Shown piece by piece: positions 42,863-54,237 of a stretch of 64,000 bases of DNA. The notes beneath the pieces are model-generated. The model did not search any database, was not told the DNA's origin, and saw nothing but the letters and a program-made list of their open reading frames with translations. The DNA is from Orbicella franksi (taxonomy: Eukaryota), in NCBI GenBank assembly GCA_964199315.1, contig OZ116699.1, positions 16,306,001-16,370,000 on the forward strand, read 5' to 3'. The position numbers were made by a program, and so were the translations under genes. Every line of letters begins with the position of its first letter. Positions within the stretch are counted from its first letter, which is position 1.

Positions 42863-43589
42863 AATCGCGCACATTTTCATTTTGTGCCGGACAAGCAAAT
42901 ATAGATCTTCTCAAAGAAGATGTAAAGACTAAGGTTGTAACGTTCCTTTACTCCCCGCTACTCTTTTCCTCCAAGGTTTATACCAGTCCTTACGTATCGC
43001 AGATACTCAGGAAGTTACTCAGCCAAACAACTGTATTCGCCCTGTGAACCGTAGAGGAGCGAGGCGAACTAGAATTTAAGAGGGAGGACCTAGTTAAGGG
43101 TTCTTCTACCCTAAATATTGTAGTTAATAACAAAGTTGGCTGCCCTTTCTCTCTCTCAGCTTGGAAGTTGGGGAGGAAGATAAATATTTGCTAAGAGGGC
43201 ATGAGATTTTTGTCGTAGACAGTAAGTGTGCAAGCCGTTTGCCAGACTGTTACAGGTTTTTGTTTGTTTTCCTAACGAACAACTCACCCCTTTTATAAAG
43301 GAATTTTTTATTTATTTCTTACTATTTTTAAATGGTAGAAAAACATCAGACTACACCGAGAGTCTGATGAGATTTAACTGATTGCTGAGAATTGGTCAAA
43401 ATTTTGACTGCCAGCTGAGAAATAATGGTTGTTGTTGTTTTTTTTTTTTATATTTTTTTATCTTATTATTTTTCTTTTTTAATAGATGATATTTTACAGT
43501 GATAGCTGAGATCTGAGATAGCACAATGTAGTGATAGCTGACTGAGAACGTAGTCTGACAATTTGATAACTGAGATTCCAGCTTCCCAA

Positions 43590-43934
43590 TTAGGCCCGTC
43601 CACCCCACGCCGGAGAAATTTGAAAACCCAGCTTTATTTCTCCGGTGAAGCCTACCGTCCACACTAATTCCTCACGAAAACGGAGCTTTTCGAAAACGCT
43701 CCACAAACCGGAAGAATATGAAAACGCCGGATTTGCGTTTAGTGTGGACGGAAAACATTTTGAAAACGGAGCTTTTCGAAAACGATGACATTACGATATA
43801 CATGTGATTTCCCTACCCAAGTCTTCCTCAAACACAAATCCAAAATGGCAAAGTGTGGACGAAAAACATTTGATGCGTTTTCAGCGTGAAAACGCCGCTT
43901 GAAATTCTTTCTGCGTAGTGTAGACGGGGCCTTA
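43590..43934. mobile_element. MITE, PIF/Harbinger-like (TTA/TAA-bounded)
   Basis: TTAGGCCCGTCCAC... and ...GTAGACGGGGCCTTA ends; internal GAAAACG repeats. Confidence 0.7.
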
Positions 43935-44753
43935 ACGGAATTAAATTGTAACTTTTGTTTTCAAATTCAAGTGGAGTCGTGCTTCACGATGAAGTCTATA
44001 TAGGGCTAAAACAAGATCAATAGTATAACAAGGAAATATTGCATGAAGGGAACTTTGGTTGGAAGCGAGGGAAATTTACCACGAAACGAATGAAAATAAT
44101 ACAAAAATTTCCTGGCTTCCATCTCGAACCTTTGGGACAAATATTGTCCTTCTCTCAATTGTACATTGGGAGTTACAGAACCCGTACCTGTCCTGTTCAC
44201 ACCAAAATTCAAATCCCCTAATGGAAAGCGTGATTTTATCTTTAGCTTAACGTATTTAGTTGGTTCAAACGGGGAATGCGGTCGATGCAACCTCGTTTTA
44301 GCGAAAAATTTCTTCGGGAAATAAGTGTTAGTTTAGGTCTTAAGTACAGATCCCGTTTTCAAGAATGCGTCCGTGTTTACCAGCAGATAGGTTACTAAGC
44401 AACACTGTTAACCTAGTGGCACTTTCTGATTGGATAATACGAAAAGTGTTCATATTCTTTGTTCTTGTTGGAGGATTTGAAGAAAAAGACAATGATTTCC
44501 CGAAATGTGTTCAGTAATGTTAATATGGTAATAGTCAAAATATCTTAAACCGCACGCCTCAACAGTAAAATTAATGCATGCGTTTTAAAACTCTCAAAGA
44601 GTATAAATGTCTGATTAAAAGGTCACGGAATAATTGTTTTCGTTGTGTTAAAATTGCCTTAAACAATCAAGTGAATGAGTGTAATACATTTTGTGCCCAG
44701 AGCAACTCCAATTTCTTAACCGATGGGGCTTAGACGCAAGTTGCGCTAAGCTG

Positions 44754-46581
44754 GAGTTTCGCCAGGAGCCTTTTATGGGCTCCTGGTTTCGCGTATAACC
44801 GCGTGGGTTCGCGCGGCACAGCAGCGAGGGAGCATCGAGGGGATGGATGAAGGGATAGGGTTACTGCGAAACCAGAAGCCATAATCGGGGACAGAGACCG
44901 TAAGCGCGCGCCATTTCTAGTATTGGGACTGTCCCCATGATATGGGACAATTTTTCTATTTTTAGAACAAATTTTGCCATCGCATGCGGCACACGCGCGT
45001 TCATGCTGCAAGGATTTTTGCTGATGTCGCGCGGGGAAAATATCGTCCGAAATTCCCGAAATGTTTAATGCTTTTGGCCCACAACTCAATACGTTCATGT
45101 CTGTTGGAATTTTTACTTCAGTATTTTCGTCCTAAGCTGCTCCAGTTTGAGTGAAGTAAGACAGTGTCTAGTTTAATTATGTCCCGCTTTTTATCACTGA
45201 CCAAGTTGTGTTCCGCTGCTTCAGGTTTTTACCAGAGCTCCACATTACTCAGCTCCACTCTAAGTTTCACATATGTTGAAGATTAACAGCTTTTCCATAA
45301 TACAGCAAAAAATCTAGCTGGATATATTTGGACATAGCAGCGTTTCAGGACTTCAAAGTTTCCCTCCGCTTGCCACACGCCTGCGAGGATTTCGCCAGAG
45401 TCTATCTCGACCGAAGAGTAAAAAAAAAATTACAAGTTTGAGTTTCGCCTGAATTGTAAGCAACGCTTGATGTTTTATCAAGGCCCAATAAGTGATAATA
45501 AAGTTTATGTCTGTAGATGCAGCTCAATTTTGTTTGTGTAAAAATCCAATAAATTGTTTGTTGTCGATGAATAAGAACGTCCGCCGATGCGTGTTTTGTA
45601 CAGTCAGTAAAACATGACAAATTGGACTTCCGCACTTTCGCCTGGAAACGTACATCGAACTCATATAATATCTCTAGTTTTAAATATGTTTAAGGTTGAT
45701 AAATGTTTGAGAACATGTTAAACGCTTAGCTGAAAATATGTGAATACAGCAGAAATAATCGCCAAAGTTAGGATGACGCTTTCTTTAATCAACTCGAATA
45801 ACGATTTTGACTTTGTTGGTTGAGTTATCAAAACTCCTTGTCTGTTTTATTTTCCCAGTGTAAAATTTCACTATGTTAAAGAAACACACATGATATTAGC
45901 AGCCTTTTGGCGTTGGTGAAAATTGTTGCAGCATCTCAGCACAAAACACAACGAAAGAAATTTTTGTCAAGATTTGTTGACAATTGAAAACACCGACCTC
46001 GGACTTGAAAGTGCATGCGCTGCACTATGCAAATGAGCTACCTGTACGCCTCAGACTTTCCTTTCAAAAACTTTTGCAAACTCGCCAAACAAACAGAAAC
46101 AATAAAATCAAGCGTTGTTTGGGAAACTCTCAAATTAACTCGATACCAGAGTAAAGAGTTTTCTTACATAACTTTTCTTTACAGAACAAACGCAAACTCT
46201 TACTCACGGTACATCTAGCGCGAGCATATATTATTCATTCACAGCGCGAAATTGAAGTCTTGTTTTCGACCCTGAAAAACTCACCTTTTCCATTAGTTCA
46301 GAGCATAAAACTACACGTAAGAGCCCTGGTTCTTATTCCCTGTCTTATTCCCTGCCATCGCTGTGAAAAATCTGCAAGAGAATCTCGCAACTCTCACCAT
46401 TTGATCACGCAACGTGACAAAGTCCACGCGAGAGCCCCCGACATGTGCGTGGATCCGCGCGGATATATGACGTCAGGATGGCGCAATTTGTTCTAAAAAT
46501 AGAAAAATTGTCCCATATCACAGGTGCGCGCGGATCCCAAGACTTACGGTCTCCGTCCCCGATTATGGCTCCTGTGCGAAA
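44754..46581. mobile_element. Non-autonomous TIR element of about 1.8 kb
   Basis: GCCATAATCGGGGAC(A/G)GAGACCGTAAG and TGATATGGGACAATTTTTCTATTTTTAGAACAAATT blocks at 44870-44980 are inverted at 46480-46580; no transposase ORF. Confidence 0.65.
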
Positions 46582-47035
46582 CTTAATTTCTTGAGAAAAC
46601 TACCTTTGTGTCCAGTAACTAATTTCATTCCAAATCTCTCCTTTTTTCTGAATTCCCAATTCCCTCCATGCGATACGCCTGCAGGGAATCATGGTAGTTG
46701 TATTCACCGGATATTTGTTTTGATGAATACACCCTGCAGGCGCGTCTCATACAGGGAATTGGCCACTTCTCTCTTAAATGTAAGTCTGTCAATCTTGTTA
46801 ATTCCATCCTCCGAAAAGTACAAATTTTCAGTTAAAAACAGGTCACGTGATCCCTAAGCGCAAAGGGTATATTCCACGTGATGGATTATCATTGAGAGGT
46901 GAAAGAAGGCAGAAGTGAACCAATTAAACAAAGCTGCATTAGGGAGGTTGGATTTTCCAAACGTTCACTGCAATAACTTGTACCTTTCGCGAAAATCATG
47001 GACAATAAAACTACACAATTTCTCAGCAAAGCATT

Positions 47036-47345
47036 TTTATTTCTTAAAAAAACCTAATTCATTCAAAACAAGTCTAAATAAATAGCAGCTCGGTAATATA
47101 TAAATATGTAAAATACTATCGACCTCAGCAAATAAATGTATTGCAACCAAAATACATCATGTAGTTTTTCCACAAAACATTACATTTTATATTCAATATG
47201 AATAATCGGTAACCTTAGTATAATAATTCTACTATAAATATATTGGAAGAAAATGCTTGTTCGCCATACATGCAATCTGTCTTATATTTCATAAAATTCT
47301 CCGATGCTAGTTAGGTATGGGCATGATCGTCGCTGGGTAGACTTC
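47036..47345 (-). promoter_or_regulatory. 3'UTR with five ATTTA pentamers and an AATAAA poly(A) signal
   Basis: ATTTA on - at 47235-39, 47133-37, 47101-05, 47079-83 and 47075-79 (the last two overlap); AATAAA at 47041-47036. Confidence 0.55.
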
Positions 47346-47495
47346 TTAAATTGGGCAGGAGTGTCTGATTTCAACTTGCGTGTTGAAGCACGACTGTGGG
47401 GTGTCTTTTATGTCATAAACAACCTGGTCTAAGTAGTCCAGTAGCACAAAGTTACGTAGCTGAACTGCTTTACGAGCGCTGATACCTCTCGCACT
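47346..47495 (-). CDS. Cytokine-like gene exon 6 (helix D, C-terminal Cys pair)
   Basis: gtttgtttcag| acceptor, 49 codons + TAA. Confidence 0.85.
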   Translation of the reverse strand, partial: SARGISARKAVQLRNFVLLDYLDQVVYDIKDTPQSCFNTQVEIRHSCPI

Positions 47496-50400
47496 CTGAA
47501 ACAAACACGTGAACAAGGAGTTAGATCTGGGCTGACCAAAGCAAACGTTTATTTCAATTTGAAATTTTCTATTGCATTGCAATAGTAGAACAGCTTTCAA
47601 CTGAGTGTCGTAAAACCAGTACCAAAATAATCACTGACTAATCACAAATTACACAGACAATCCAGACAATCCGATCTCAATCCAAATCTCAACACAAAGG
47701 CGAACGAGTCGCGATTGGTTTTGGTTTTACTCAGTCTGATTAAGTGACAACGTGCCAATCGCCTAGTTCTAACGAGGTAATGTAAACCGAAAGAAAATGC
47801 AAATTACCTAGGGAACTCACGTGAAAACGGCGCTATTAATTAACTCAAACTGTAAGCATAAAGTATGTCGTTAGAACATGGTAACAATAAACTTACTTTC
47901 TGATGAGCAGCCAGAGATGTCATGACGGTCATATTCACTGGCAAAGATGCTGTGATATTTTTACCACGTGTGTGAAGGGCCTGTATTGAGAAACGATAAT
48001 ACCGTAGATCAGGAGGAGTTAGGACGCAAAATACATCTTACTGTATTTCGTAATTGTATATTCTTCACTTGAAAAGGTAGTATTCCTAACTGGGCTTATC
48101 CAGCTATTTGACGGCATGTGGCCGCGCACTGACTAATGAAATAATCGAATCAGTAACCCCTGATGAATTAGAGCACGACATGATTCAGATAAACGGAAGC
48201 AGAACAAGCGTTTTGGGAGAAACTATAGCACTTTCTGCGTCAGGGAGAGACAGTAAATGGAGAGACATCAAATTTGATTTTGTGACAGAATATCAAAGAA
48301 TCAAAATTGATATTTTTGTGAAATTCTGATGTTTTAGTCATTACTGCTCTTCTTTCTTCTCCTATTACAACATAATAAAGCAAGTTTGTAGCAATTTCTC
48401 GGTCATACTTATAAAAAATACGATATATACCACCCAAGAAAATGCTCTACCTCGGCAGCGTGGAGAGTTTGTTTTATAACATTCGGCTCAGGAGAATCAC
48501 ATCATAACACTTACATAGTTGTCGATGTCTTTGATTCTATTTTCCAAATTCTGAAGCAATCCATTGAGTGTCTTCTTCAATGTGTGGCCAGAGATACTGC
48601 AGTGAAATTTTGACCGCTTTTCGCTCTCCACGACAACTTTCAATGGCTCCACAAAGTTCTTCAGTGCTGTTATGCACTGAACAGCACGCTGGCTAGTACT
48701 CTAGTGATAAATATAGCTAAATTGCATTAGTACACCTAACACCCAGTGAACAAGTCTTTTATTTCGCAACACTGGAAGCAGTATTTTCAGTCGTTAAAGC
48801 TTTTTAAACGTTTTGTATTTGCTCAGGTTTTCAGTGGCAGTATTGACTACCGACAAACTTATGGTTAATAGAGGTGAATGGTTATAAAAACCTGTTGAAT
48901 TGTATGTTTTTGTTCGCTTTTTCAGCCCACGTGCACAAAGCAACGTTTCGGTACCGTAGTATTATGCATAGTGTATGAGCGTAAAACAAGAGATTCGGCA
49001 TGGTCGTGGACCTTCCGACATAAATCTTGGCACCTTTGTTTGCTCCTTTGACGTTTGCCGGGCTTCATAACCATTCCCCTCTATTATCTATGATAAACCT
49101 AAACCTGAACGTTTTAACCTGTCAAACTGGACAAAAATGAAAGCAACTACGATTCTTCATTCTTTTCATCCCTGAATGATTTGAAGCAAATAAATAAACA
49201 TACACATCATGATTTTGTTTGGTTCTGTGAATAAAGGCTTTCTAGTTAGCTACCATTCAAAAAAATAGTGAACAGCACTGTCATGTGGTATAGGGGAACC
49301 TTTGTTTAAAATATGTGCCTCATTAGCATAAGATATTCAGTTTCTCATCAAGTTACCTTATCCGGCCACTCGCTGTAGTCGCTTGGAACAAGTTGTCCTA
49401 ACGCACGCCCAAGGGGACCTCCTCGGTGAGAATTACTAAATCCATGAGCTTTTTTCTATGAGAGAGAAAACAACTTTCTTAATGACAACAACAACATCAA
49501 TAAATCATCAAAAGATAACATGATATTTTTTTCAGTGTCATAGACACTAGGTGGAATTACTCATTAGGTAATTCAGGATGGCACACTAATAACCGCACGT
49601 ATATCGCACGTTTTGAGACATTTTACTACTCATAAATCTTTCTTAATAATGAAGGCGAGAGGTAGTATAATCAGGCAGAAGTGAATACTGTGTGCTTAAC
49701 AATTTGTAATGTAGCATTGAAATGACCTTAACCGGCAAAATTCGTTAAAAAGTTCCCTTTGTTTGTAATATTGCTCATGCTGAGATTTGTTTACAATATT
49801 AATGATCTTCTATCAGTAATCCATTGTTCGACATGATTAAGAGGTCCAATAATTTCCCCGACCCGTTGCGAACTCAAATAAAAATTATTCATACTTGATT
49901 GAGGTGAATATTTAAGCCATTTTTTTAAGCCAGTGGCTGGATTCTGATGCATGATGGATGAACAACGTAACTGCGCTTTAAGCTTGGACTAAACTTGCTT
50001 GAAGCAATAACAGAGCAAGCTAACATAACAGCTTTCAAAGTTGTTTCGAAACTGTTTAGTAATGACAGAGTAACACCAGAAATAACTACTTACGTAGCAT
50101 TCAAGTCCTTCATAAGTTGAGTCCTTGAGACAGTCAAACACTGGGTCATCCGGGACTTCACTCCCTTCACCAAAGGCCAAACCCGCGATGAACAAACTGG
50201 CCCAAATAAAGAATGTTTTACCTAAAAAGAGAAAGATAACCACACGAAATGAGCTTTTAATTAAAAAGTGAACAGTGTTCAGTGTTTACATATCATACCA
50301 AGTTTCTTTACCGTTGTGCCCTTTAGATTCCTAAATCCTGGTCACCTTAAGACTTTTTTATATAACATTTTATTAAAAGAAATTAAATAAGAAAAGACAT

Positions 50401-52980
50401 TTTTGAGGTGTTACATCAGTTCGTGCGAAAAAAAATAAACTTGTTCGTTAGAAAAGGTAATTAAAATAAGAAAGAAGTATGTTATAGTTCTAGCTGATAA
50501 TTTTCGTAAATAAAGAATGAAAGATAAGCTGAATAAGGAATCACGCAATAATTTAGGGCCAATTAAGAACGTTTAGGGAGTGATGACTTTAACAGCACCC
50601 CTCCCGCGGTCGATCCCGTCTCCTTATGATCCGCTTTCGTTAACATGTAAGTTAGGAGATTAGTGTTAATATATCATGTAAGGTGGACGCTTTTTCGGTT
50701 ACACAATGACCGCTTGTCTTGTTCGAAAGCAAAAGCTCTTTTCAAACAAGACTAATAACGATGACAGCTGACGTCACAGGCACAAATACCAACTTGGGTC
50801 TATTTAAAGTCTTTGCCAGTTCTTATTGCATGGTCGTTGAAAAAAAAGAAAAAGTTTACTTCCATTTAGTTTGGAGTGATGCGATGAAAATGAAAAAGAA
50901 CGGCCATTGATAATTTATATGGGTTCGGTTCCTTGTTTTTCCTTGTACCTAGATAACAACTACAGCCTCGTGTAAATTATTCTCTATTTAAAGTAAAAAT
51001 AGTTTGTGACGGTATTTTTTTTTTCAAAAAACACTCTTGCATGTAACGGAATGATCTCTAGGAAAACAATTTTTTATCTTTAGATTTAGATATTTTGTAC
51101 GATTTTTTTAATTCAAAGTTCTCTGTTTCAACATGTATATCTTACAGTTACGCCATTTAAAGGTATTTTTTATCTCACCCAATTTCAATTTAGGTGTATA
51201 ACGGGACAGATACTTGCATATTTTAAAATTTTAGTAGTTTCTGAATATTTAACAACGATGAAAATTGAATGCCTCGATCAAATAACGAGGATATTTTAAA
51301 CTGGTAGCAGAAATTATAGGACTTTCGGACCTGTCACGTCCACAGGCGTTGCATGGAAATCACAGTAAATAAGAACGAATTCAACTAAGTGAAATACATT
51401 GGACACATCGGACTCGAGTTCTCTACGCGAGTGCGTAAGAATCAACTCGACTACTGAGAAATTTGACCCATTCTTTTTGTTTCAAAAGGAGTTGAAGTAA
51501 GTCGGTTCAGCTAATTTAAGAGTTAATCATTGCTAACGTTCTTAGACCGAACAATCAGCTGAAATCTATTCCAAAATCTACGATAAAATTAAATTCTTAT
51601 CTTCAAGCCACCGTGTAATTTTTGATGTAAAGAACTTACGAAACTTCGTAACTTACAGATTTGCAGAGTACCGAGGAAAAATATTTGATAGAAACTTTGA
51701 ATGTTAGGAAATCTAATTTGTAATCGCCCCTTATTTATAACTAAGTCACGGTAAAAGAATCTGTTCTGCAATATATCTATGTTCTAACTGTTTAGAGTAT
51801 TTTCTGTCGTTATATGCTATGGTCACTTTTCACTTTGTCTTTCCAATCCTTTTCTCACGGTCGGATGAATGGACCCCGCTGGGTTAAATTTTAATTCTGA
51901 CAAGGTAGAAGAACAATGACGTACATGCCTTAGACGACGCCGCTAATAAAACAAGAATTTAATATTTACCTAAACATCTCGCATTTGTTCAATTTGTTTA
52001 TCGCTATTGTGGTCCAAATTATATGACACTGTGGCAAATAAATACACTGACAGGAACTGCACTGTGATGGTTCATGTTTTCCCTCTGATAAAAAGCAGCA
52101 TTTGGACATTTAACGGCGTTGTAGTTTTGAAGAAGACGACAAGAAATTTTTCAAGATATAGAGTGGAATCCCGATCTTTCGAACTTCCAAGGGGCTGAAG
52201 GAACATTGGTTTGAAAAATCGGATAGTTCGAGTAATCGAGAGTAAAATTACAATGTTCGACTGAGGAGAGGGCAACAAGTTTTGGTTCGAATTATCGGTG
52301 GGAGGTTCAAAAATCGAGGGTTCACGAAATCGCACGTTCTGAGACATTTTACTACTCATAAATCCTTCTTAGCTTAGCAACGTCCTCGGCAGAATTTGAC
52401 TTAAAATAAACCAAAGCAAACTTTGTTAACAAGGCTAAAATTGTTGTTCTTCCTCTGGAGATTGATAGTTTAAAGTAACCAAATTCGGTAAAAGTTGGGG
52501 CTCAAGGATAAAGGCGGGTTAGAACGCAATTTCTTATGTTTTAGGGAGCCAAATTATGATATCTTTAGCCAATTCAGTATTTCAATGACTGACACGGGTT
52601 TCTTAAAATCGAAGAAAATGTCGAAATGACATTTTTGGTACACTAAACAGCAAAGATTGTAAGCCCAACATGTCAAGGACAGCCAAGACAAATCACGGTT
52701 CTTGAAAGCTCTAAACTAGTTTCAGAAGACAAATGATCGGATTCTAAAGATCGATTTTCCCTTGGTCAAAAGGTGTAGTGAACCACGCTAACAACGTTTA
52801 AAAAGCTCACAATCAAGGTCTTTAAAAAAGGTCTGCGTTTAGAAATTCTGTCATTCATTACCTTAATTTGTATACTTCAGTAGCTTTTAGATACAGAAAT
52901 TCAGCTATCTTGGTGAAAATGGCTTCAACTTTTCATCGTTGGTGGAAAAAAATTATATTGTTACACTTACCTAATTTCAT
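47346..52980 (-). CDS. Secreted 218-aa protein, putative long-chain four-helix cytokine (LIF/CNTF-like, IL-6 family)
   Basis: complement(join(47346..47495,47897..47980,48515..48700,49357..49455,50094..50221,52971..52980)) = 657 nt, all GT-AG, phases 1,0,0,0,0. Protein: MKLGKTFFIWASLFIAGLAFGEGSEVPDDPVFDCLKDSTYEGLECYKKAHGFSNSHRGGPLGRALGQLVPSDYSEWPDKSTSQRAVQCITALKNFVEPLKVVVESEKRSKFHCSISGHTLKKTLNGLLQNLENRIKDIDNYALHTRGKNITASLPVNMTVMTSLAAHQKSARGISARKAVQLRNFVLLDYLDQVVYDIKDTPQSCFNTQVEIRHSCPI. Confidence in the gene model is about 0.85; the family call is less certain. Confidence 0.72.
47897..47980 (-). CDS. Cytokine-like gene exon 5 (CD loop, two N-glycosylation sequons)
   Basis: caatacag| acceptor, AAA|GTAAGT donor, 28 codons. 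Confidence 0.82.
48515..48700 (-). CDS. Cytokine-like gene exon 4 (helices B and C); not in ORF track
   Basis: tttatcactag| acceptor, TAT|GTAAGT donor, 62 codons with amphipathic periodicity. Confidence 0.82.
49357..49455 (-). CDS. Cytokine-like gene exon 3 (AB loop); not in ORF track
   Basis: ttttctctctcatag| acceptor, AAG|GTAACT donor, 33 codons. Confidence 0.8.
50094..50221 (-). CDS. Cytokine-like gene exon 2 (signal peptide, helix A)
   Basis: ttctctttttag| acceptor, TAC|GTAAGT donor. Confidence 0.85.
52971..52980 (-). CDS. Cytokine-like gene exon 1 (ATG AAA TTA G)
   Basis: aaccATG context, perfect G|GTAAGT donor, phase 1 matching exon 2. Confidence 0.75.
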
Positions 52981-53034
52981 GGTTGAATATCGACTGTCCC
53001 TTTGGAATAACGTTAGACGTGTCTCTCTTGAAAT

Positions 53035-53042
53035 CTTTATAT
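53035..53042 (-). promoter_or_regulatory. TATA box (TATAAAGA) of the cytokine-like gene
   Basis: About 55-60 nt upstream of the ATG, implying a 5'UTR of about 30 nt. Confidence 0.55.
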
Positions 53043-54237
53043 TCTTGTTTGTACCTCAAGTACTTATGTTCACTTAGAGTCTTCCTAAAGGACTGTGTGT
53101 CTCTTTTATGCATTTTGACGGCGGATGTCCTTCGCATTATTTTTTCCATGTACATTGTTGCAGGTGATTTCATCATAACTAAGTCATACTCTAAAAGAGC
53201 CTTTTTGGGAGTCGTTAGAGATGATCTTCCTCGTTTAAGTTCCAGGGGAAAGTCACTCAGTGGAAATTTTCCTGTTCCTACCGGTCACTACTGCTTTCTA
53301 ATCCGGCAGCGAGAATGCAATCATGCGAGGAACGGGATAACAAAGAGCAAGCCTGCGCTAAAAGTAGTTTCGGTTATGCAATGACGCATGGTGATTCCGG
53401 CTTGACTCAGATCAAGAAGTATTCCCGAATCTTGAAATCACCCATATTTTCTTAATTTGGGAGTTTTTTTTTAAAGATATTTGCTTGATATCTCGGTTAT
53501 GCTCGATTTTCAAGTGCAGTATGGTCTTGCGTGGGTGTTAGTCACAAAAATCAGAGCAACGCGGGTCCATTTTCTGGGTTATAATTTCAGTGTCGATTTT
53601 TTTAGTCCCTTAGTACTAGCAGGTTATTTTCACTTCAAAAGCTCAATAAGATACATCACCTTTAACGAGTTAAGCAAAAACGGACTGAGCAAACGGGAAA
53701 ACTGATTCGAAACCACTACGAAAATTAAAATTCTGTTTCTGTCATACGAAAGTGTCCACACCTAGGCCTCGATAACAAAAGCAGTTGTGAATGTCTGTTT
53801 CTAGATTTCAGATTTTGTTCACCAAGTTTAATGACAAAGAATTTCTCAATAACATATTGAAGGTTTTCCTGGTGAATTTGGCATTTTTAGTTCTTTCTAT
53901 ACTATTATGTTAAGAACATAAGTTGTCGGTTTATTCAGTAGTTCCCAGTTTATTCGTTCATTTTCCACTTCCCTGTTATAAACTCTCTTGTTCGAAACCC
54001 TCCAAATTTAGCAGAGCTTTAACAAAGGATTACCACAATTAAAATTAGTTCTAAAATGGTAGCTCAGTCATACAACAATTGATAACGTTCTCGCCCTTGA
54101 TGCAAACGTGAAATACGAAAGTTTTGGTCTCTTAGCTTGCATCTAAATTTAAACGATCACTAATTTATGCAAAGTACAGTAAAGGGTCTGTATTTTGCAA
54201 CGTTTCTTCTAAATATAACAAACGCTTACAAATATAA

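Follow-up and report, generated by a model that had tools for sequence, protein, structure and literature searches.

A Putative Long-Chain Helical Cytokine Gene in the Coral Orbicella franksi

Gene Structure at the Locus

The window analysed here, a stretch of 64,000 nucleotides (nt) from the coral Orbicella franksi (assembly GCA_964199315.1, contig OZ116699.1), carries on its minus strand (52980-47346) a gene of six coding exons whose product would be a secreted helical protein. We consider it likely that this single-copy coral gene encodes a secreted protein of the long-chain cytokine fold and shares common descent with the vertebrate GH/PRL (growth hormone/prolactin) and IL-6/LIF/CNTF genes, a view that draws on the predicted fold of an orthologue and on the positions of the introns.

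Reading of the minus strand together with a boundary-anchoring script gave six coding exons and five introns, closed by a TAA stop codon (Table 1). All five introns have GT-AG ends and pyrimidine-rich acceptors, and their phases are 1,0,0,0,0. The reading made from the bare sequence had proposed a 10-nt first coding exon, a phase-1 first intron and thereafter phase-0 introns, and the scripted six-exon model confirms this layout; it likewise bears out the placement of intron 2 right after the Tyr of LECY^KKAHG (the caret marks the intron), with the donor adjoining 50094 and the intron beginning at 50093. Exon 2 has no in-frame ATG ahead of the hydrophobic core, and because it has no start codon of its own, an upstream mini-exon is required. 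The predicted product comprises 218 amino acids with an N-terminal signal peptide, judged by eye, the hydrophobic N-terminus ending at the caret in ..LAFG^EGSE. The conserved block upstream of the mini-exon, in which a TATA-like motif lies, is probably the core promoter; it is 88.6% identical over 35 nt to Desmophyllum pertusum DNA (locus L003:10016-10050), and a comparable ..ACATCCGC..TATAAAAGAGA block lies about 125 nt 5' of the ATG mini-exon at a second coral-like locus, L005.

Table 1. Features of the six-exon gene, in window coordinates; model residues are those of the structure model of the Oculina orthologue
Feature	Positions	Strand	After model residue	Remarks
Conserved upstream block with TATA-like CATAAAAG	53100..53134	-		about 120-150 nt 5' of ATG
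Coding exon 1, 10 nt, ATGAAATTAG then gtaagt donor	52971..52980	-		Met-Lys-Leu and first base of Gly4
Intron 1, phase 1, 2749 nt	50222..52970	-		within signal-peptide coding part; GT..AG ends and phase
Exon 2, 128 nt	50094..50221	-		remaining signal peptide, mature N-terminus, most of helix A; Cys-Tyr end
Intron 2, phase 0	49456..50093	-	27	immediately 3' of Tyr46 (TAC); 3 residues short of helix A C-terminal end
Exon 3, 33 codons	49357..49455	-		last turn of helix A and entire A-B crossover loop
Intron 3, phase 0	48701..49356	-	60	1-2 residues ahead of helix B start
Exon 4, 62 codons	48515..48700	-		helix B, short B-C loop, almost all of helix C
Intron 4, phase 0	47981..48514	-	122	3 residues short of helix C end
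Exon 5, 28 codons	47897..47980	-		C-D crossover loop with short helix and conserved N-x-T site (VNMT)
Intron 5, phase 0	47496..47896	-	151	C-D loop, about 4 residues ahead of helix D
Exon 6 with TAA stop	47346..47495	-		helix D (..LRNFVLLD.., best-conserved motif of the protein) and C-terminal tail, two invariant Cys
AATAAA, probable polyadenylation signal	47036..47041	-		about 305 nt past stop codon; read from sequence

Conservation in Other Corals

The gene is single copy in the 497-Mb assembly, and the window protein itself had no match in the searched protein collections. With exon 4 as query, a 217-residue protein of Oculina patagonica and many exon read-through fragments of other corals were recovered, exon 4 being the exon most widely found among them; further proteins, from Desmophyllum, Montipora and Acropora, came from profile searches, and 'uncharacterized protein' models are present in RefSeq for Montipora capricornis, M. 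foliosa, Acropora muricata and Oculina. The Oculina orthologue is 65% identical to the window protein and collinear with it through residue 141. Across seven aligned coral species, identities range from 34 to 65%, six Cys residues are invariant, and so is the Cys-Tyr pair ahead of intron 2; the intron directly after this Tyr is invariant in corals as well. Four residues downstream of the Tyr, the corals have His, Tyr or Asn, and in no case Gln. Pairwise ratios of nonsynonymous to synonymous substitution rates (dN/dS) among the coral orthologues lie between 0.16 and 0.39.

The intron sites are conserved along with the protein. At the Desmophyllum pertusum locus all five sites recur with identical phases, and the mini-exon, ATGACTTTGG followed by gtaagt, sits in a homologous context, kept together with its flanks amid otherwise diverged DNA. 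Two loci from metagenome-labelled assemblies (L005 and L006, 35-51% identity) retain the four downstream intron sites and their phases; in L005 the first exon is shortened to 4 nt with its phase still 1, and the Montipora start MG^K implies the same. A tiny phase-1 first exon is also present in RefSeq/GenBank models of Acropora muricata (MTLG^K) and Oculina (MILG^K). About a dozen open reading frame (ORF) fragments from other corals run through exon 2 as far as ..CY and continue with VS, the translation of the GTAAGT donor.

Several deposited models differ from this picture at their N-termini. The Desmophyllum model (P0018, L003:10001-13084) uses an upstream ATG in another frame, the donor of the mini-exon and an AG inside exon 2, so that 59 unrelated residues stand in place of the signal peptide and the N-terminus is wrong; the Acropora cervicornis model P0020 is N-terminally truncated. 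Mini first exons seem to defeat the annotation of this family. For the Oculina patagonica gene the first exon reads MAKGVMG^K in RefSeq (P0038) versus MILG^K in GenBank (P0002), both of phase 1, a difference that may reflect alternative promoters or annotation noise. In the exon-2 fragment P0031 of another coral, ..ECYHDVSK.. replaces ..ECYVS.., and the donor of that species may lie two codons further 3' with phase 0 retained.

Transcript data gave hints of expression at most. For the last exon and the 3' untranslated region, a fraction of 0.23-0.46 of the sequence words was present in several polyA runs, which is a weak hint of transcription, and in the polyA run X5 15% of the words of the full 5.9 kb were found. 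A rival reading is a gene model artefact or a decaying pseudogene in which the mini-exon and the 50094 donor go unused: neither junction-spanning reads nor, in the searched protein collections, a spliced full-length transcriptome product came to light, the annotated Desmophyllum model has another start, and the Oculina RefSeq model has another first exon. We nevertheless find such an artefact barely credible, for the reading frame is intact, every splice site recurs in four genomic loci from deeply diverged corals, dN/dS lies well below 1, the mini-exon and its flanks persist in diverged DNA, independent RefSeq models carry a like first exon, and exon 2 is without a start codon. Taken at the level of genomic sequence, the observed gene layout is confirmed, the donor at 50094 resting on cross-species conservation rather than on transcripts.

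Predicted Fold

For structure prediction with AlphaFold 2, a cleaned 24-row alignment of mature parts served as input, and residues of the resulting model carry the Oculina residue number minus 19. A first run on an 8-row alignment that included the signal peptide reached a predicted local distance difference test score (pLDDT) of 49 and was discarded, its helix segments agreeing with those of the later model; two MAFFT alignments were dropped for misplaced short exon fragments and replaced by an alignment of mature-part fragments. The final Oculina model has a pLDDT of 87.4 (84.7-87.4 over five models) and a predicted template modelling score of 0.86. It shows four long helices, A (11-30), B (62-86, kinked), C (101-125) and D (156-180), joined by A-B and C-D loops of about 30 residues each, both with short helices, and by a B-C loop of 14 residues. 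The Oculina model thereby has the arrangement that defines long-chain class-I cytokines: four long helices running up-up-down-down with two long crossovers and a short B-C connection. Members of this superfamily are secreted proteins with a cleavable signal peptide and about 160-200 mature residues; the predicted coral product agrees with this, its hydrophobic N-terminus being conserved in the orthologues.

In four fold searches with the model, the top matches were long-chain helical cytokines only. Among 350,542 PDB chains, the first 46 Foldseek matches were all helical cytokines, at weak E-values (0.02-1), and included prolactin, CNTF, EPO, LIF, GH, IL-6, IL-11, CLCF1, OSM, leptin, TPO and interferons. 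VIA-align, which is independent of Foldseek, likewise placed helical cytokines at all of the first 29 ranks among 48,161 PDB representatives, with scores of 13.8 for IL-11, 13.6 for CLCF1 and IL-6, 13.5 for placental lactogen, 13.1 for LIF, 12.6 for IL-27p28, 12.3 for CNTF and OSM, and 11.6 for GH. The top 30 of a fold search against the Swiss-Prot part of the AlphaFold Database (AFDB) were exclusively CNTF, the prolactin family and cardiotrophin-2, and uncharacterised invertebrate proteins were among the matches in the AFDB clusters. A feature search with the ESM protein language model, which uses sequence only, found as nearest named clusters LIF_OSM, cardiotrophin-1/CNTF/Hormone_1, LIF, G-CSF/IL-11 and IL-6, with scores of 0.89-0.91 and about 200 of 256 features shared. 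Taken together, the modelling supports a long-chain class-I four-helix cytokine fold for a secreted protein with a mass of about 20 kDa. Between the member families of this superfamily, sequence or profile similarity is often lacking; for the coral protein, significant similarity of this kind to IL6, LIF_OSM, CNTF, Hormone_1, GCSF or EPO_TPO was not found.

The start of helix B (..RAVQCITALKNFVEPLKVVV.., exon 4, 48640-48700) resembles that of helix D (..KAVQLRNFVLLDYLDQVV.., exon 6, 47420-47480). MAFFT repeatedly confused exons 4 and 6, and the tblastn match between the two is not significant (E of about 0.9); the resemblance may be due to chance or may be the trace of an internal two-helix duplication.

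Intron Positions Relative to Vertebrate Cytokine Genes

In vertebrates, an intron separates residues 38 and 39 in CNTF, and the LIF gene is interrupted after mature Tyr44 (between 44 and 45), its coding exons of 19 and 179 nt leading up to codon 66. The IL-6 coding exons of 19, 191, 114 and 147 nt give phases 1,0,0,0 and put the introns close to where helix A ends, helix B starts and helix C ends, and GH intron 4 lies after residue 126, helix 3 spanning residues 106-128. The IL-6 layout is backed by the literature in general terms. The GH1 gene has five exons, of which exon 3 encodes amino acids 32-71, that is, the entire loop between helices 1 and 2, with human c.291+2 belonging to the exon 3 donor (PMC6878336, PMC3014602); given these limits of exon 3 and the position of its donor, both flanking GH introns must therefore be of phase 0. 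The GH1 boundaries c.10, c.171 and c.456 were not found in PMC11491352. In a lamprey PRL-like gene, exon 1 encodes just the first three residues, and the number of exons in GH/PRL family genes is five to six (PMC9546618). In fish, the genes of type I interferons contain four phase-0 introns (PMC4929537).

The coral gene has the canonical exon structure of the superfamily, the vertebrate side of which is checked against papers for GH introns 2 and 3, and it shares with GH/PRL genes the five to six exons, a first exon of about three residues and an exon 3 that corresponds to the A-B loop. When helix A is superimposed without gaps, model residue 27, which precedes intron 2, would fall on GH residue 31, with which GH exon 2 ends (1a22_A, model residue 10 on chain residue 14). 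On CNTF it would fall on residue 38 (1cnt and rabbit CNTF, offset 11) or 37 (8d74, offset 10), on LIF on residue 44 (1emr, 1pvh and 1lki, offset 17) or 43 (2q7n and 7n0a, offset 16), and on IL-6, in several chains, on residues 41-43. The sequence-only reading had seen in the gene structure that of a long-chain cytokine, and this is supported by the fold, by the ESM search and by introns 2-4 at GH-type places; its argument that a shared intron position speaks for homology has gained in substance as well, as three positions match rather than one.

How much weight do these matches bear? The phase string 1,0,0,0,0 has a chance expectation of about 1.5% under generic phase frequencies and is weak evidence alone. 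By comparison, four introns placed at random in 197 mature residues would land on all three canonical sites in phase 0 with a probability of 1e-5 if a deviation of 1 residue is allowed, and of 2.4e-4 if 4 residues are allowed. Both figures assume uniform placement, and a bias of introns towards helix ends would raise them. Such an increase would hardly amount to orders of magnitude, and the evidential weight lies in the intron positions, not in the phases.

The fold could nonetheless be real and the intron match a matter of coincidence or structural bias, the fold perhaps having been reached independently in corals. Introns favour the ends of secondary structure elements, more introns are of phase 0 than of any other phase, and signal peptides are often split by a phase-1 intron; the phase pattern taken alone is the 1.5% event just mentioned. 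The fold comparisons, moreover, give alignment ranges and no exact residue equivalence, with the prolactin register several residues off, the residues that follow the Tyr do not keep the motif of LIF-type cytokines, and no sequence similarity was found. We regard coincidence as unlikely all the same, although it deserves to be reckoned with: place and phase agree at three separate sites, for which the joint chance is 1e-5 to 2.4e-4 under the uniform model, an up-up-down-down bundle with two long crossovers is rare outside cytokines, which were the sole class atop the 48,161 PDB representatives, and the sequence-only embedding independently led to the same cytokine families.

Putative Receptor Contacts and Function

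Among the exposed segments of the coral protein, those at which helices B and D start are best conserved, and in gp130 cytokines the start of helix D constitutes receptor site III (PMC9601804). These two segments are likely receptor contact sites. Group 1 of the class-I cytokine receptors includes the receptors for GH, PRL and EPO. CRLF3, a group-1 class-I receptor that occurs from cnidarians to mammals and is without known ligand (PMC6797617), may be considered a candidate receptor. Mechanistically, the coral protein would act as an extracellular ligand that joins class-I cytokine receptor chains via the faces of helices A/C and D.

One might object that the gene encodes a coral-specific secreted helical protein of another function, such as a skeletal matrix, adhesion or toxin-like protein, that is cytokine-like in architecture only. 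The family was recovered from Scleractinia and coral-associated metagenome contigs only, no receptor or downstream pathway was identified, the six invariant Cys form a pattern of their own, and expression was not observed. Yet the gene has a single copy and, like cytokine genes, changes rapidly while under purifying selection, a very low or conditional expression suits a signalling factor more than a structural protein, and the starts of helices B and D form the best-conserved surface, including the segment equivalent to gp130 site III (PMC9601804). We therefore assign only a small probability to a function of this other kind.

Repeats and Neighbouring DNA

In two coral metatranscriptome runs, contig depth rises to about 595 and about 4750 at 48900-49099 within intron 3, as opposed to 1-6 elsewhere; high depth was also seen at 47500-47899 and 52100-52299, with many loose ends. 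These intronic stretches of high depth look like expressed or multi-copy repeats. Intron 1 holds copies of interspersed repeats, and a 43-nt direct repeat, 95% identical between 49603-49645 (intron 2) and 52329-52371 (intron 1), is probably part of one. A search of 43500-53500 against Rfam matched no family.

About 450 nt past the likely poly(A) site of the gene lies an element of about 1.7 kb (44873-46574) with terminal inverted repeat (TIR) blocks at 44873-44904/46543-46574 and 44938-44981/46477-46520 that are 94-95% complementary. An ORF of 122 amino acids (44730-45098, minus strand) overlaps one of its ends. The element looks like a TIR DNA transposon.

Discussion

Most parsimoniously, vertebrate long-chain cytokine genes and the coral gene owe their likeness to an ancestral layout of the superfamily, in which a very short first coding exon is followed by a phase-1 intron within the signal peptide and by phase-0 introns at the helix A, B and C places; the coral gene would represent this layout plus one further phase-0 intron ahead of helix D. 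Sequence similarity to the vertebrate genes would have been erased over time, with fold and intron positions retained. That the gene is a true cnidarian descendant of the GH/PRL and IL-6/LIF/CNTF ancestor, still carrying the ancestral exon structure, has in our estimation somewhat better than an even chance.

Several points weigh against a genuine coral cytokine gene of common descent with the vertebrate genes. The structure model is that of the natural Oculina orthologue (65% identical) and not of the window's own protein, and it was built from a shallow alignment. Pfam searches with the exons and with full-length orthologues, at E-values up to 10, matched no cytokine family, and phmmer and profile searches against PDB sequences yielded no cytokine but only chance matches (Rad50, a botulinum toxin translocation helix; E of about 1). 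The fold tools report the first and last aligned residues only, so that the mapping of the Tyr presupposes a gap-free helix A, and for prolactin the register deviates by at least 2-4 residues. Among the vertebrate intron coordinates, those of GH introns 2 and 3 are the ones backed by papers. Members of the family turned up in stony corals and in coral-like metagenome contigs, and nowhere else. At the transcript level, two raw-read polyA runs labelled with the same species, of which about 12% each was read, showed no reads or splice joints on the exons within 47100-53090, and two metatranscriptome contig sets covered introns and exons lowly and evenly, as contaminating genomic DNA would. As to the pathway, PMC13203501 and PMC6797617 disagree on JAK in cnidarians, and Pfam searches of the coral's own genome for IL6Ra-bind, Jak1_Phl, JAK FERM_F2 and STAT_bind, done in six frames and insensitive to intron-split genes, came up blank; these receptor and JAK blanks are uninformative because STAT, which is reported in cnidarians, was blank as well.

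To our knowledge, helical cytokine ligands outside vertebrates have been missed by sequence searches owing to their fast divergence, with Drosophila Unpaired as the known exception. IL-6-family ligands have been reported from vertebrates only (PMC13203501), no invertebrate LIF-type sequences were found (PMC9601804), and a described cnidarian member of the long-chain helical cytokines was not encountered in the literature searched. If common descent holds, long-chain helical cytokines and their gene architecture would predate the cnidarian-bilaterian split, and the coral protein would be a concrete candidate for the type of ligand that CRLF3 binds. The fold in combination with at least three canonical intron positions makes an argument for deep homology that is independent of sequence. 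A defined protein is now at hand for studies of coral receptors, immunity, wound repair and symbiosis. The gene structure may also be used as a handle in the search for hidden ligands, mini first exons being one cause of missed or mis-modelled annotation.

Comparison with Known Systems

Among the gp130-type cytokines, CNTF and LIF (PDB 8d74_D, 1cnt, 1emr) differ from the coral gene in gene structure, CNTF lacking a signal peptide and having two exons, LIF three, compared with six in the coral. LIFR-binding gp130 cytokines carry the site-III motif FXXK at the N-terminus of helix D and LIF-type cytokines an invariably kept Gln where helix A ends (PMC9601804); the coral segment at the start of helix D reads ..LRNFVLLD/E.. 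in all seven species, with the Phe present but Leu in place of the Lys, and the coral proteins, in which the Y^xxxQG-like motif is only loosely shared, are without the Gln. The cysteine pattern of CNTF and LIF is likewise unlike that of the coral protein, and sequence similarity is not detectable. A strict LIF/CNTF orthologue is ruled out by the absence of FXXK and Gln, by the six exons and by the Cys pattern of the coral protein's own. The group of IL-6, IL-11 and G-CSF (1alu, 8qy4_A, 1cd9_A) also shows no sequence similarity to the coral protein, whose domain is interrupted by four introns.

Class-II helical cytokines, that is, type I interferons and the IL-10 family, obtained structural scores below those of the class-I long-chain group, and a phase-1 intron in the signal peptide is not reported for them. 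Drosophila Unpaired (Upd), compared here by description only, is like the coral protein a secreted helical ligand of an invertebrate. Upd proteins, the known invertebrate four-helix ligands of JAK/STAT signalling, are much larger and bind extracellular matrix. Uncharacterised arthropod proteins occur among the neighbours of the coral protein in the AFDB clusters and the Atlas.

From GH, PRL and placental lactogen (1a22_A, 2q98, 1f6f_A) the coral protein is set apart by the lack of a Pfam Hormone_1 match and by the extra intron ahead of helix D, intron 5 having no counterpart in the mammalian five-exon GH and IL-6 genes. Some teleost GH genes do have a fifth intron. Of the conserved GH/PRL disulfides, one ties the A-B loop to helix D in a large loop and another closes a small loop at the C-terminus; the coral protein has six invariant Cys, two of which lie 10-12 residues apart past helix D. 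In structure scores CNTF, LIF and prolactin resemble the coral protein equally well, while in exon count and in the exon for the A-B loop it is the GH/PRL genes that come closest to the coral gene.

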